From: Dimorphilus gyrociliatus
Lineage: Eukaryota > Animalia > Annelida
Reading direction: 5' to 3'
Assembly (NCBI GenBank): GCA_904063045.1
Contig: CAJFCJ010000018.1
Span: 682,001-746,000 of the forward strand
Length of the DNA: 64,000 nt
Both the position numbers and the translations under genes were made by a program. The notes below the pieces were generated by a model. The model saw nothing but the letters and a program-made list of their open reading frames with translations, searched no databases and was not told the origin of the DNA. This document shows positions 13,476-22,511 of the stretch, piece by piece; the first letter of the stretch is position 1, and each line of letters starts with the position of its first letter.

Positions 13476-14871
13476 ATGGAAGCAGAAGCAAATACTATGG
13501 CCGTGAACCGAACCGGTTCGTCTAGTCCACAACTTCCAACACCTGCCGGTTCTGAAATGACTCCACCTTCACCAGTCGCTGAAAATTGGTGTTATACCCA
13601 AGTGAAAGTGGTCAAATTTTCCTATATGTGGACCATAAATAATTTTAGTTTTTGTCGAGAAGAGATGGGAGAAGTTCTTAAGTCTTCCACTTTTTCGGCA
13701 GGAAGTAACGATAAATTGAAATGGTAATCAATTTGATTAACTAACCGTTTCAAAACTTGATAGATTATTTTTTTTAGGTGTTTAAGAGTAAATCCCAAAG
13801 GTTTAGACGAAGAATCGAAAGACTATCTCTCACTTTACCTCCTTCTTGTCGCCTGCAATAAAGCAGAAGTGCGTGCTAAGTTCAAATTCTCAATACTCAA
13901 TTCAAAAAGAGAAGAAACAAAGGCTATGGAGAGTCAAAGAGCTTATAAATTCGTCCAAGGAAAAGACTGGGGATTTAAAAAATTTATTAGGCGTGATTTT
14001 CTAATGGATGATGCCAATGGCCTATTACCCGATGATAAACTAACAATCTATTGTGAGGTGTGTTCTTAAATATGTCGATTTCGGACTGGCAAATGTTTTT
14101 CATATATTTTTATCAAACAGGTTTCGGTAGTAGGCGACACTGTGAATATTTCTGGTCAAACAAATCAACATCAAGTCAAAGTACCCGAATGCAATCTTTC
14201 AGAAGACCTAAATACGCTTTTAAACACAGGAGAAATGAGCGACGTTACATTAATAGTAGGCGATCGTCCTTTCGAAGTTCATAAGTGTATTTTAGGAGCT
14301 AGGTCACCTGTTTTCCACGCAATGTTCAATGTTGATATGACTGAAAAGCAGAGCAACCGGGTTATTTTAGACGACTTAGACGAAGATGTTATGCAAGAGT
14401 TGTTGATTTTCATTTATGGAGGTAAAACACCAAACTTGTCTCGAATGGCAACAGATTTACTAGCTGCTGCTGACCGATTCGCTTTGGATCGATTAAAAGT
14501 TATTTGCGAGGAAGCCCTGTGTAGTAGTCTAAATGTGGATACTGTATGCGAAGTTATGGTCTTAGCTGATCTTCACAATGCGAAGCAATTAAAAAAACAA
14601 GCTATAGAGTTTATAAACAGGTACAACCCTAACACCCGAGAATATGAAATGTAAATTTATATATGAATAACATGCCGATCGCCAGTAATTGCATTAACTG
14701 TTAAGTAAATTTTGTTGCAGCCACGCAACGGACGTAATGGAAACCCATGGATGGGAAGAAATGGTCAAAAGTCATCCAAACTTAGTTGCTGAAGCTTTTC
14801 GAGCATTAGCAAGCCAACAATCACCACCTCTTGGACCACCTCGAAAAAGGATAAAACAATCAAATAATTAG
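13476..14871 (+). CDS. SPOP: Speckle-type POZ protein (MATH-BTB-BACK CUL3 adaptor), 4 coding exons
   Basis: Near-identical SPOP motifs [54 protein letters not shown] and [12 protein letters not shown], with C-terminal [11 protein letters not shown]. Confidence 0.97.
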
Positions 14872-15577: not shown

Positions 15578-18500
15578 TCAAAGCAAAGCACCTTTGTTTT
15601 CTTCTTTTTCTACGCTCGTAGTTGATTTAGTAACAGCCGGAGTAGTTTCAGTTGGTTGAATATGATTGATAGGACCCTCAGGCATTATTCCAGGTTCTAA
15701 ATCGGTCAGAAAATTAGCTTATCTATAAAAAATTAAAAAGTTAATAGTACCGGAATCCAAGTTAAGAGGAGTTTTCAGTTCTGCTTCCAATCTCATTCCA
15801 GCTTGCTGCTTTGCCCTATATTCAAAGCCTTTTAGCTGTTCCATATGAAATTGCTGTCTTTCTTTCAGCAGTTGTTGTCTTTGATTATCAAGCTGTAGTA
15901 TATTGAAAGATTAGTGAAAAAGGTTACGGTTAATTAAAACGTACCAATTCTCTCTCCTTATCCATTATTGCCTCTAGCTCTTCAAAATGTCTTAATTTGA
16001 TTTCTAATTTTTTCATTTGAGTTTCCACTAGAAGGGCCACCAATGACTTAATCTTTCTTTCTTCCATTGCTGCTAAGTGCTAGAAAATAATTTTTATTAA
16101 TATATAGCTCGGTCGAAATTGTTATACTATACCTTAGCTTTGACAGCCGCTGATGCTAAAGCGCTGGCAGCTGCGGCAGCAACTTGAGCGTCAACTTTCA
16201 TAGGCTTATCACTATCTTTTTTATCTTTGTCTGATTTCTCTTTATCAGTATCTTCGCCTTGTTTTTCCTCAGCTGCATCTGATTTTTCTTTCTTAACTTT
16301 TGTTTGATCTCCAAGGGTTTCAGTTTTGGCCTCTTCTTCTTTTTCACCTCCTTTATTTTCATCTGTTGACTCTTCTTTTTCAGTGTTTTTATCTGCGTTT
16401 GTGCCCGCGATATTTGTTTTCTCCAAACCGAAAGTTTCATCTACGTTTTTACCCTGAGATTTTGCTTCTTGAACGGTTTTTATATGAGCTTCGACAAGTG
16501 AGGGCGGTACTTCTTCTTTTAATTTTGTAAATTCTTCGAGCGCAGCCTTTGATGCCGCTGCTGCTATTCTAGGATCAACAACAGAAGCTAAGAATGCCAC
16601 TGTCGACATGATGGGATTTCCAGATTTTGAAAACGGTGTTGGCTGATAAGCTAAAGGACCCATAGCTGCTGACCCGCCATTTTCTTCATCTAGGTAAGGA
16701 TCTTCGATAGGTAGTCGCAAGAAATGTAAAATACATTCATCTTGTGTTCTCGTTCCAATGTGTTCTGACACCTTGTTCCAGTCATCCTTATACATTTCTA
16801 AGCCTTCCAATAATTTGAGAGTCTCTTCGTCCGACCATTCTCTTGTTCTGGTTGCTGCTCCTTTTTCCTATAAATTTGTTATCAAATTGAAAATGATTCG
16901 TAAATACTGATTTTTAGACTTACGGCAAGTTCCTTTTTGGCATATAGATCTTGTCTCAATCCAAATGGAGGTTTTGTTGTTGCTGGAGCTTCATCACCTT
17001 CTTGTGGGTCTCTTGATTCATAAATCATTCGGGTGGCTGAAGGCTGTTTTAAAAGAAATTAACAGAAAATAAAAATATTTCTAACGCCTCGTGTATTTTA
17101 GCACAAAGTATTATTTCAAGAGCATCAATAAAAATCAAATCTATTGTATTTCTAAGTTAGAGGTCTGTAGCATTAAAATCCCCCTTTGTTGTGCTTTCAT
17201 AATCAAAAGCTTCATTCTGTTTGCCATTCAGTTCTCTACTTTCCATCTTTACTGAATTATCTATACCGATTTCTTTTGATTCAAGTTGTGGTTTAGGGGG
17301 TTTGTAAACAAGGAATGCAGTCAAAAATAAACATAGCCCAATAAAAGACGCTCCACAAGCTAGGAAAAAACAGTTTCGTGATAAATTTTTGGCATTATAC
17401 CACAAACATGAGCCTTTCGAGCCACATCTACTCTCCCATTGTAAACAGTCTGTATCAAATATTTTTCCTAAAATTATAGGTCCAGGTATTGTACCTAACA
17501 ATCGTATGAAAATCCACTGAAAGCTTATAGCAATCTTTTTATGTTCATCTCTGACACAGCGAGTCGTTACAGAAATGTTGATAGATTGCAAAGAGAAAAC
17601 AGCTAAAATAGAAAAAAAAAAAAACACAAAAAATAGCGGCATTAGTTTACATGAAGGTGCTTTACAAGGTTCACTTTTAACCGTAGCTTGACTTTCGTTA
17701 TGATAGCGATTTAAACATGAACAGTTTTCATAGACTTTCACTTTATCCGTATTATTTATAACAGAACATCCAGCATGACAAGGAGAATAGTACTTAAAGT
17801 TGTTGTCTCCACAAACAGGTATATATTGCACGTTTGTGCAAGAGCAGTTTGCGTTACAGCTATCTTCCAAAGAAAGAGAATTGTGAGACCTTCCCGCATA
17901 ATCAACATTAGCTCCAGCAAATTTCGTTTGATCACAATTTATCCAAAAAGTTAAAGCCGTAGTAGAGGCAATAAGTGCAATTGTCATCTGTAGTTTCATC
18001 ATTCCCGGTATGGACAGTCTTAATTTATTAACTGCCACTGCTCCACATATTGTACCAAGAGCTCCGCCCGGAATGACAACAGCTCCAAATAAAGCACCAG
18101 ATAAACTTGTGGCTAATGAAAATTTTGTCTCTATTAATTTTGTTCCAAAAGCTGCGAAACCTGCTGTTAATACATAAGATGTGCAAATGCACAATGATGC
18201 CAGCATATAAACAGGATTTTTTAAGAGTCCTACAGGATTCCCAGGTATTATAATATTGATAAATTTCTAATTAAATTTTACATTCATATATAACAATCAA
18301 GAGATAAAAAGACTTCAAGCTATTGATCAAAATTTATCTGAATTTTTATCGGAAATTCGCTACTTACGATACCCATAGATAAAAAAGAGAATAGTACTCT
18401 GACTTAATTGGGAAATAAAATAAAATCGATAATCGAAATTTCTTGATCAATTCTAAGTATTCTTAATAACTGCACTTAAATAATTTTAACATTAAAATTT

Positions 18501-21500
18501 TAATAACATCTCGACTCGACTACTGATAGCATTTAATCTTCTGATTATCTCTTATATATCTGGGAGTCCTGCCTAAAATTAGTTTCGGCATCTGCTTTAA
18601 TCCCCAAGTCTCTTTATTCTGTAATTCTCCTCCGTGAGCTTCTGATATTCTCTTAGATCTAATTTCAGCTGCTCCCGGCATATCTGCTGGATATCCAGTT
18701 AGTGGGAGGGTACAAAGAAAAATCAGGCCTCCACATATCAAATATCCTATCCACCAGGCTCCTATCCATCTTGTATCATTATTTTGAATAAGAATTTCGT
18801 CTTTACTAATTTTATAAAAATCTGTAAAAAGTCTCAGAAGAAACCCACCACCAACAAAGCCTAAAGCTGGACCGAACACGGTTGTGGAGTAGTAGAAACC
18901 GACTAAAAACGAGAATCTCTCTTTTGTGACAATATCGTCAAGATATGACAAGGCAATTGTCAAAACAGGAGTATGTCCAACTCCTACTAAAATTCTGCCA
19001 ATAATGAAAGCAACCATGTGCTTTCCTACACTTCCAACATTACTAGATGAATCGGAATTGCACAAACTCTCATTTTTAGGACCACAAACATCACTTAAAT
19101 TATTACTTCCACTGGGTTTATAGGTAGGCGAATTAAAATGAGGTATGACAAAAACAATACTTCCAGCAACACAAAGAAATAAACCAAAGGACAACCACCT
19201 AGGTCTATGAATTCTGGCAGCAATTACGCTTAACAGAAGGAGACATAACAATGAGGAGACATCAACAGAAATAATTATTGCTGAACTAGCTGCTGAACTA
19301 ATTCCAAATCGCTTCTCTATGCTTGAGAGAGTCAAACCTGGTAATCCTGATGTTAACGTTGATTGAAAAATAGAAGCTAGACAAAAGAATAAGGTGTACC
19401 ATCCAGGGGTATTGATCTTTTGTAAGAACTTTGGTTTATAGCCGAACCAGCCGTACATTAAATCCTTTTCACTCGACATTGTTTAAAGTAATAAGGTATC
19501 TAGTAGGCTCGTTTGTGTTTTAATACTAAAACTGCACAACGTCTTTTTAAATACATATGATAACTCCTTATCAAGACCGATAATCAAAAATATTCGAAGC
19601 AATAAAATAGTTCAGAGTTACTGATGCTCTTACATATTGACTGTCACTAACCTGTATTGTTTTTGGAGGATTAACTGGCTGTAATCCGGATGGAGTATCC
19701 ACCAAAGTATTGAAATGTTGGGTGGATGGTGGTCCCATAGCAAGAGTTCTGCTATCTCCATCTACTTGATAATTCACCAATCCCCATTGCTCCAGAAATG
19801 CGTGTACTCTATACCAACGAATAATAGTTTAATTTTAAACTAAAAAAATTGTTTACTTATTTACAATTTTAGGGTAGTTGAACTTCCGGAAAAATGCATT
19901 AATACTATTGCTATCTTTCTAATATTAACTGATAACTTTATCTAATAAAATTTATTACCAAAGTAAGAGCAAATAAGTATTAATATTTACCTCATTATAC
20001 AACAAACGTCGCCAGCTAAATTTCTTCGACAAGCAGTAAAGGTAAGATACTCCCTAGGGTTCAATCGATATGTATCAATCATAAAGTTTCTGTAAGCCAC
20101 ATATCTGCAAAAGACATGGTTTTTAATTTATTTTAATTGGGCAATATATTTATATATATGTATTTTACATTTCAGGCGTTTTGCTCTTATTTTTGCCATT
20201 GAAAAATTCAGGTAATCCTCTCCTCTCGATTGAGTGGATACTTGAGTAATCAAACCAAGCTGAATAAGAAGGTATTATTATATGATGCGTTTGATCTGTC
20301 ATTTGTATAGGTTGTGTTTGTCCTTGGTCATCTTCTTCAGAAGGAGATGGAGGCCGAGATCTTCCTTCATCCGATTGCTATTTAAAATAGTGGTTATACA
20401 AGTTTTCTATGTGCAAAATGTAACTATTACCTTATCTTCATCTTCCTCCCCGATATCCATAAGCGTGTTATTTTTGTCCGGTTTAGCGTCTTTCTTTGGA
20501 TTGATAACTTCTTTAACTTGAGTTTCGACATTTTCTTCACCTTCATCCATCATTTCTTCTTCTTCCTCCTTTACACCTTTTTTCTTTTTTGCGTCAACCG
20601 CGCTTACAACTATTCGTCCTGATCTTTTCTTCTTCATGGGTGAAGGAGACACCGATCTCTTCCTTTTTCCCTTTTAGAAAATAAATTTATCGAAAATTCT
20701 TATTTAGGGCACAAAAAATCCTAAAAACCAAGCAGTTTTCAATTTCGTACTTGGTCAGGTATACATGCATACACAAAGCCGGTAGACTCACTATTCACCG
20801 CTTTTTCAATATAGTATTGAAACCGAAAAAAAAACCGACTAATGAATATTTATGAATGTCAAATTCTCGACGCTCATTGGTTTAGCTATGTAAAAGTGCG
20901 CTATAATTCAAATATAAAAGTAGTCCGTACTTTTCCACTCTTTTTTGAAGCAGTCGAACTGGAACTCGGAGCAGGTGAAACAGGATCAAGAAAATTAAGT
21001 TCTTCAATACTTAGTTTAGTCACTTTCGCTTTTTTTCTGTAGAAAAAATAATAGACATGATGAATATGAAATCATTGGTTTGTTGAATTTTGTTTCTCAA
21101 CAAATGTAGACTTTTTTGTGTTCTTAGGGTAGTTACATTTTTTAAGCACGAAAAATATAGAACTTGATTGAAAAGAGTAAAAAATTTTAAGGTTCTGTAC
21201 AAGCTTTCCTACTTTTTTTTAGTTTTTTGAAGATGAAAATAGCTACAAGTGTCTCTTTTAAATGTTCAAAAACTAAAAAAAAACTTACTCGGCATCGACC
21301 AAGTAATCTTCCTCATTCATCCATTCGTTGTACTCGTCAAGATCTAATAACCAGTCAGCAGATACCTCCCACAGACTGCATTCTGTAGGGACATAAACTT
21401 CTTGTTCCAAACGTTGCTCCGAGTATACGTCATAACTGTAAAAGATTCGCATTTGACCAAATCTCAGAATATACCTTATACTAAGGGATATTTAATAACC

Positions 21501-22511
21501 TGTCTGGCAGATTCCAAAAATGAATGATTGTTCCTCCATTTTCCCTTTTGAATACAGGTCTTACAAATTCTTTACCCTCACTTTTCGATGTCTGCATAGC
21601 ATGGATGATATGAGTAGCATTTTCCATTTTATCAACAATTTCTCCTTTATGACGTTTCACAATGTCTCTAAATTTTGGTAATAAGAGCTTTTCGACTGAC
21701 TGATGGAAATATATTTTCGGTGAAGTTGAAAATCCAGCCGCAGTCAAGGAATTCCACATCTAGATTATAAATAAATGAATTTCAGCCTTTCTCCCTTGAA
21801 AGGTTTTGTTGAATTTACCTCTGTAAACATTTCTGTGTTTTGTTCTAATTTACTTGCAGTGCCCAAGTCGAACTTCTTCCTATTATGCAGAATTCAGAGA
21901 AAATAATACAATAGTAATTTAAACTAAAAATGAGACACTTACCAGCCCTGATCAAACTTAAACTTGAAAGCAGCCGTAAATAGGCAACAAGCTGCACCTC
22001 CACTTTTAAAATCCAGCCAATATTTCATCTTTTTGGTTAAAATATATGTGTAATATAAGCTTATTATTATTAAAAACTTTTCTTACAGGTAATTTCGTCA
22101 TGAGTGGTTTTGATGCATTTTTACCAAAATTATCCTCTTGAAACTGAATAAATTGATGGAGGAGAGAACTAAGACTCTTATTCGTAGTTGATTCTCCAGT
22201 AATATACTAAATTAAAATATATACAGTTAATAGATACAAATTTTTGCCGAAGTCGTTATTTTTACGTGAAGAAAAACAAAGATCTTGATTCTGACAAACA
22301 ACGAACACTGCGATTATAATAGCACATAACGAAATTGTATTGAATAACAAAAACTTATTACAAATACAGACATATGCAAATGAAAATTATTTCAAACCTT
22401 CTTTGCTTTTTTTTCTAACCATGTCTTGATATTATCTAACCCGTTGATGGTTTCCTGGGATTCGAAAAAAGCTTTGTTCGGCGAACCGTCGGTTTTCTTC
22501 ACCAGCGCCAT
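15578..22511 (-). CDS. SMARCC2: SWI/SNF subunit SMARCC1/2 (BAF155/170, moira): N-terminal module, chromo-like, SWIRM, SANT, leucine zipper
   Basis: Starts [17 protein letters not shown]... SWIRM exons lie at 20280-19652 ([14 protein letters not shown]). A phase-0 intron 19651-17044 joins KTIQ|[12 protein letters not shown] reads [48 protein letters not shown], and the stop is at 15578. This is a single-copy pro-orthologue of SMARCC1/2. Confidence 0.95.
17157..19479 (-). CDS. Organic anion transporting polypeptide (SLCO/OATP, OATP4-like), 2 exons, nested in a SMARCC intron on the same strand
   Basis: About 650 aa. It has an OATP N-terminus ([19 protein letters not shown]), [35 protein letters not shown], a Kazal-like [20 protein letters not shown] region and [20 protein letters not shown]. 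Exons 19479-18573 and 18229-17157. Confidence 0.92.

Follow-up and report, generated by a model that had tools for sequence, protein, structure and literature searches.

How does a complete gene come to sit, on the same strand, within a single intron of a gene for a core chromatin-remodelling subunit, and do the two behave as separate units? The question is raised by a stretch of 64,000 nucleotides (nt) from the annelid Dimorphilus gyrociliatus (contig CAJFCJ010000018.1, positions 682,001-746,000; called the window below, with all coordinates given as positions in it), where the host gene SMARCC (BAF155/170, moira) and a transporter gene of the OATP (SLCO) family both lie on the minus strand. 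The original prediction, made from the letters alone, described a complete SLCO gene inside a SMARCC intron and took it for a retro-inserted or intron-stripped gene that might act as an either/or switch with its host. Our analysis indicates that the locus is very probably an ordinary sense-strand host/nested pair, in which a self-contained, SLCO4-like unit of 659 codons in two coding exons occupies the SWIRM-SANT intron of the single-copy SMARCC gene.

A two-exon OATP gene fills one SMARCC intron

The host exon upstream of the insert ends at 19652 and the next begins at 17043, leaving an intron of 2608 nt; these limits, which had been predicted, are borne out by the sequence and by RNA joints in two runs. 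The host joint is in phase 0, since 1233 nt (411 whole codons) of joined SMARCC exons precede 19652. Within the intron are two long open frames (19479-18520 and 18206-17157), which together make a complete gene in the orientation of the host. Its ATG at 19479 lies 172 nt past the donor of the host and is preceded by an in-frame stop two codons away, and its stop codon, TAA at 17159-17157, lies 113 nt ahead of the host acceptor, the same distances as originally given. The coding parts of the mRNA measure 907 and 1073 nt, which makes 660 codons counting the stop (659 without it), and the OATP family profile PF03137 (545 positions, cut-off 25.8 bits) matches both halves, so that the description of a complete same-strand SLCO gene with two coding exons stands. 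Domain and protein searches were run exon by exon. The mapped features are as follows, in the order of transcription.

21939..22499, minus strand: exons of the SMARCC N-terminus (SWIRM-assoc_2 region), limits not mapped (PF16496, sole genome matches, best E 2e-11)
21500..21759, minus strand: SMARCC exon (RNA joints 21759/21819 and 21435/21500; joined exons keep an open frame)
21289..21435, minus strand: SMARCC exon (RNA joints; frame check)
20931..21036, minus strand: SMARCC exon, joint read with the cut moved by +1 (RNA joints; frame check)
20431..20670, minus strand: SMARCC exon, acidic/basic linker, joint read with the cut moved by +1 (RNA joints in X1 and X2)
20169..20377, minus strand: SMARCC exon in which the SWIRM domain begins (joints in both X1 and X2; translation)
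19991..20104, minus strand: SMARCC exon, SWIRM core (RNA joints; PF04433 match)
19652..19808, minus strand: SMARCC exon, end of SWIRM, whose donor opens the host intron (sequence; joint 17043/19652 in X1 and X2)
17044..19651, minus strand: SMARCC intron holding the whole OATP gene, 2608 nt, GT..AG (sequence; RNA joint 17043/19652)
19534..19563, minus strand: conserved non-coding 30-mer with a TATA-like box, putative OATP core promoter, 55-84 nt upstream of the ATG
18573..19479, minus strand: OATP coding exon 1, first half of the transporter with the family signature (PF03137 positions 1-258, E 3e-70; X2 contig 18572-19681)
18230..18572, minus strand: OATP intron, 343 nt, GC-AG, phase 1 (X2 joint 18228/18572; sequence; the relative has a GT donor there)
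17157..18229, minus strand: OATP coding exon 2, remaining half of the transporter, Kazal-like loop included (PF03137 positions 296-545, E 1.3e-58; Kazal_2)
17044..17156, minus strand: gap of 113 nt from the OATP stop to the host acceptor, which must also hold the host branch site and pyrimidine tract
16924..17043, minus strand: SMARCC exon of 40 codons, phase 0, protein 100% identical in the relative (RNA joints; frame; species comparison)
16133..16867, minus strand: SMARCC exon, SANT and SWIRM-assoc_3 (PF00249 E 6.9e-7; PF16498 E 1.3e-26)
15945..16079, minus strand: SMARCC exon, SWIRM-assoc_1 coiled coil (PF16495 E 1.4e-13, sole genome match; joint 16079/16133)

SMARCC is one gene, spliced across the insert

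The RNA evidence comes from runs of two studies, both read as assembled contigs: X1, a coral metatranscriptome, and X2, a run from 2017 whose library type is not on record and which contains cDNA, as its contigs are spliced. A single spliced contig of 1379 nt in X1 joins six SMARCC exons between 20669 and 16489 and jumps from 19652 straight to 17043. The same joint is present in X2, the shorter side measuring 121 nt in X1 and 26 nt in X2. All SMARCC domains are found on one transcript, the X1 contig spanning the insert (16489-20669) and the X2 joints continuing on both sides of it, and fully spliced SMARCC mRNA predominates in each run. When the RNA-supported exons were joined by script, the result was a frame of 696 codons with no stops. 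SMARCC is therefore spliced cleanly across the nested gene. That it might instead be two separate genes, a possibility raised along with the original prediction, is ruled out by the spliced contig that bridges the insert together with the open joined frame.

The insert divides the host domains into two groups, with SWIRM-assoc_2 and SWIRM (PF04433 at 19990-20106, 40.6 bits against a cut-off of 28.6, E 1.9e-8) upstream and SANT, SWIRM-assoc_3 and SWIRM-assoc_1 downstream. PF16498, the SWIRM-assoc_3 profile, has one genome match only. Because each of the three SWIRM-associated families matches the genome at this locus only, SMARCC is single copy in D. gyrociliatus, and the gene that is interrupted by the transporter between its SWIRM and SANT exons is thus that of a single-copy core BAF subunit.

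The nested gene encodes a predicted SLCO4-like transporter

OATPs have twelve membrane helices, a Kazal-like cysteine-rich extracellular loop between helices nine and ten, and a superfamily signature, D-x-RW-(I/V)-GAWW-x-G-(F/L)-L. The signature is present in exon 1 with Y replacing F/L, and a Kazal_2 domain (PF07648, E 7.4e-8) covers residues 118-164 of the exon 2 open reading frame. A crude hydropathy scan gave several hydrophobic segments in each half, at a resolution that did not separate 12 helices. The best named protein matches are SLCO4A1/4C1-like, with 35-38% identity over the C-terminal half, and by these best matches the product would be an SLCO4-like organic-anion transporter.

The two coding exons are joined in X2 (18228/18572). 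Only when shifted by +1 does this joint have an AG acceptor together with a donor of known type, and every placement of it yields an identical mRNA. An intron-retaining OATP contig (18203-18601) is also present, which suggests incomplete splicing; if the intron were retained, the frame would close at 18520, 319 residues in. In X2 the depth of OATP exon contigs was 152-395, that of SMARCC exon contigs about 740-930, and that of mostly-intronic bins (two larger host introns and the OATP intron) 39-95, these being per-contig means that allow a rough comparison only.

Two further observations concern exon 2. A run of 13 T within 17600-17639 encodes a poly-Phe stretch in a membrane helix, and read mapping skips the stretch as a repeat. 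Nearby, an X1 contig with 255 foreign letters attaches (loose end at 17701); it probably belongs to another organism or is a chimera.

The nesting is old and the transporter is under selection

Exon-by-exon protein searches also turned up the locus of a relative, in Logan contigs L013, L014 and L015 from runs SRR23372228, SRR23372229 and SRR23372216. On L014 and L015, all on one strand, the SMARCC linker and SWIRM exons are followed by a GT donor, a spacer of 219 nt and the ATG of OATP exon 1. L013 carries OATP exon 2, a gap of 98 nt, the 40-codon SMARCC exon and then the exons for SANT, SWIRM-assoc_3 and SWIRM-assoc_1. The last 28 nt of L015 are exactly the first 28 nt of L013, and so the two contigs abut within the OATP intron of the relative. 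The nesting is therefore the same in both species, with the same host exons on either side. A MATH-BTB neighbour on the opposite strand is also found in the relative (L013 3820-4976) in the same orientation as in the window, and local synteny thus extends beyond the nested pair.

The OATP intron is about 864 nt long in the relative versus 343 nt in D. gyrociliatus. Its donor is GC in D. gyrociliatus (18571-18572) and GT in the relative (L015 ~1338), in a similar context (TTTTAG|GCAGGA versus TTTTAG|GTAGGA). The intron of the relative (L015 1338-2002 and L013 1-228) also has short inverted-repeat arms about 410 nt apart, at which the contigs break, and which are possibly a small inserted element.

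Between the two species the OATP protein is 82% identical in exon 1 and 72-73% in exon 2, with nonsynonymous divergence (dN) of 0.12 and 0.21, respectively, versus 0.01-0.05 in SMARCC exons. Synonymous divergence (dS) by the NG86 method was saturated and not computable; identity at fourfold degenerate sites, used in its place, was 112 of 291 (38.5%). Low dN despite saturated neutral sites means that purifying selection acts on OATP, whose frame is intact, and the nesting is older than the divergence of these two species, which are far enough apart for synonymous sites to be saturated.

An assembly join at the intron edges had been named as the other way in which the arrangement might fail. None was found: X2 contigs are unbroken across both edges (17018-17594 at the acceptor, 18572-19681 at the donor), and the independent contigs of the relative have the same layout, which rules it out. 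More broadly, there is next to no chance that the locus is an artefact, be it a misassembly of two loci or a dead OATP pseudogene, as contigs from runs other than those of the assembly span both edges, the relative repeats the layout, the frame is intact in both species with dN far below saturated dS, and spliced RNA exists.

A putative promoter and 3' end within the host intron

It had been reasoned that the promoter of the transporter must lie in about 170 nt or in host exons, unless the transporter is made by alternative processing of host pre-mRNA, and a promoter in the spacer gained ground here. The 30-mer in the spacer matches the relative at 27 of 30 positions, compared with a best of 22 among 300 shuffles and despite the saturation of fourfold sites, and includes a TATA-like box, TATTTAAAA at 19553-19545, 74 nt before the OATP ATG. 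D. gyrociliatus is reported to have narrow promoters (<150 bp), with a TATA box, a downstream promoter element or both at most start sites mapped by cap analysis of gene expression (PMC7854359). On the strength of the conserved block it is plausible that OATP has a promoter of its own inside the 172-nt spacer.

At the other end, the original prediction had noted the lack of AATAAA and ATTAAA in the gap and had drawn from it a weak poly(A) signal that could let the host transcript pass. The lack is real in D. gyrociliatus. The weakness is not conserved, since the 98-nt gap of the relative holds both ATTAAA and AATAAA, 42-75 nt ahead of the acceptor, and a weak signal as a design feature is thereby set aside. 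Canonical hexamers are in any case of little information, because they are scattered through this AT-rich DNA: the host intron holds six copies of AATAAA/ATTAAA, of which three fall in OATP coding sequence. In both species a poly(A) site in the gap must sit on or beside the host branch point and pyrimidine tract, and this is the one feature that could allow competition. No sign of competition between the OATP poly(A) site and host splicing was seen in the contigs or sequence examined.

Taken from these features, transcription of OATP would start from its own narrow TATA-type promoter in the spacer, at about 19523, and its poly(A) site would lie within the 113-nt gap, right before the host 3' splice site. 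Host polymerases, in turn, would read through that poly(A) site, and the whole unit would leave with the intron. A promoter and a terminator belonging to OATP itself are likely on this reading of the sequence.

Independent unit or shared transcript

Several observations weigh against an independent nested unit. The OATP joint has a shorter side of just 26 nt, below the 31-nt rule for bridging contigs, and is suggestive, not strict, evidence of splicing. In X1 the SMARCC transcript is seen with no credible cover of OATP. Assembled contigs carry no information on RNA ends, either start or poly(A) site. The 113-nt gap offers only variants of the poly(A) hexamer (AATACA twice, AATAGA and AATAAT). 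Finally, X2 contigs pass unbroken from OATP into both flanking SMARCC exons, and so host pre-mRNA or read-through transcripts exist, which may add to the OATP coverage.

This last continuity, over the host donor (18572-19681) and the acceptor (17018-17594), together with a spacer of just 172 nt and an OATP 3' end no more than about 113 nt from the 3' splice site of the host, where processing events could compete, is what would be expected if OATP mRNA were made from the SMARCC promoter by intron retention and intronic polyadenylation, with the transporter and the BAF subunit as mutually exclusive products. We regard this as highly improbable. The continuity at the edges ends where a k-mer graph must break, and shows only some unspliced RNA or DNA. 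An unspliced SMARCC frame gains 27 codons and, more than 438 codons long by then, meets a stop at 19570-19568; from there it is 88 nt to the OATP ATG, so translation of the transporter from unspliced host RNA is unlikely, as it would need efficient re-initiation. The conserved TATA-containing block also stands at the expected distance from the ATG. No joint linking a SMARCC splice site with an OATP splice site was found in the X1 and X2 contigs, and the possible chimeric proteins were rejected, a splice from the host donor to OATP exon 2 stopping after two codons and one from the OATP exon 1 donor to the host acceptor after eight. D. gyrociliatus is moreover reported to lack operons, spliced leaders and trans-splicing (PMC7854359). 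The proposed either/or switch, and production of the transporter from host pre-mRNA, thus found no backing.

A milder form of coupling grants OATP its own promoter and supposes that its poly(A) site overlaps the host branch point and 3' splice site, so that its use on host transcripts would yield a truncated SMARCC with the N-terminus and SWIRM and without SANT or the coiled coil, the weak D. gyrociliatus site being tuned to spare the host. Such regulated competition would fit the presence of variant hexamers only within 113 nt of the acceptor, and premature host polyadenylation is linked to nested genes in mammals (PMC11694760; PMC3192792). We nevertheless think it very unlikely: the relative, with the same nesting, has canonical ATTAAA and AATAAA, so the weakness is not conserved; hexamers are uninformative here, given the six canonical copies inside the intron; and fully spliced host mRNA dominates both runs. 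It would be bolder still to read the overlap of signals, kept through saturating divergence, as a selected kinetic switch whereby cells that make the transporter lower full-length SMARCC or make a SWIRM-only isoform. We give this little credence; if true, it would couple the dosage of a chromatin remodeller to a transporter. The independent host/nested pair thus remains the reading we favor.

Origin of the nested gene

A separate matter, compatible with an independent nested unit, is whether OATP arose as a retrocopy that landed in the host intron and acquired its one intron afterwards. Of the SLCO loci in the genome, at least 11 in number, OATP has the fewest introns, and two paralogues and a Trichoplax homologue lack an intron at the position of the OATP intron. 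Two paralogues with an intron in the same loop (L002 and L010) appear to have it some 35 residues earlier; in three more the loop is free of introns. Against this origin, which we consider unlikely, no parent-like paralogue was found among the paralogues compared, the best being 25-33% identical over long alignments, and on this ground OATP was also rejected as a recent copy, by duplication or retroposition, of a different SLCO gene of this genome. The relative has the OATP intron too, at an identical site and in the same phase, a bryozoan (Bugula) SLCO4C1-like gene has an intron 2 nt away in a different phase, and no A-run or poly(A) remnant follows the OATP stop. In several paralogues, furthermore, one exon alone spans as many as about 360 of the 545 profile positions. 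Since several of the SLCO loci have such very large exons, the few-exon OATP is the extreme of a local trend. Intron loss has been reported for the D. gyrociliatus lineage (PMC7854359), and stepwise loss explains the structure equally well as retroposition. Retroposition is therefore not needed, and the suggestion of a retro-inserted gene was not upheld.

Relation to known arrangements

Host/nested pairs are common. The present one resembles others of animals, such as those in the mammalian catalogue of PMC11694760, in that a complete coding gene lies in one unusually long intron, the host splices over it and the pair is conserved between species. It differs in its extreme compactness (172 and 113 nt) and in having a single-copy core chromatin-remodeller subunit as host, and not in kind. 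Nor is the shared orientation as exceptional as the earlier statement that most nested genes are antisense would make it: the two orientations are described as "broadly similar" in mouse and human, with only a slight bias to opposite (PMC11694760), and the statement was thus too strong. The host itself resembles SMARCC1/SMARCC2 (BAF155/BAF170) and Drosophila moira, with SWIRM-assoc_2, SWIRM, SANT, SWIRM-assoc_3 and SWIRM-assoc_1 in canonical order on one spliced transcript, except that the D. gyrociliatus gene hosts a transporter in the intron of its SWIRM-SANT linker. The nested gene shares with SLCO4A1/SLCO4C1-type OATPs of insects and bryozoans (names as given by the sources) the OATP profile, the Kazal-like loop and the D-x-RW-I-GAWW-x-G signature, whereas it has only two coding exons and a GC-AG intron; its subfamily is assigned by best matches only. 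Spliced-leader operons of nematodes and Oikopleura likewise pack same-strand genes tightly in compact genomes, but no spliced leader or operons are reported here (PMC7854359), no loose 5' ends were found at the OATP start among the X1 and X2 contigs, and OATP lies inside an intron, not downstream of a gene.

The locus is therefore a well-documented example of a known arrangement and involves no new mechanism, and the general view of gene organisation is unchanged by it. What it offers is a fully mapped, RNA-supported and evolutionarily conserved case of nesting on the sense strand, in an animal whose genome is very compact and lacks operons, and a natural test case for polymerase read-through of a nested poly(A) site less than 113 nt from a host 3' splice site. 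For annotation, the locus calls for two separate gene models, with SMARCC neither split nor fused to the transporter.

Other observations at the locus

The GC content of the window is about 30-37%. Apart from the host intron, three SMARCC introns, at 19809-19990 (182 nt), 20671-20930 (260 nt) and 21037-21288 (252 nt), are several times the species median of 66 bp (PMC7854359), and the short introns at the locus measure 53-64 nt. Larger introns in D. gyrociliatus are associated with open chromatin peaks (PMC7854359). In the lysine-rich SMARCC exon, one X2 contig has an extra T at 20584 (depth 217 of 1528) that would shift the frame if real; slippage at a homopolymer or a minor allele is the probable cause. 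The MATH-BTB (SPOP-like) gene, at 13869-14654 on the plus strand, is arranged tail to tail with SMARCC. Lastly, the SMARCC transcripts in the X1 contigs (16258-21900) are more than 99% identical to the genome, from which they differ at seven single bases across the exons covered, and the coral sample apparently harboured either a strain of D. gyrociliatus or one of its very close relatives.

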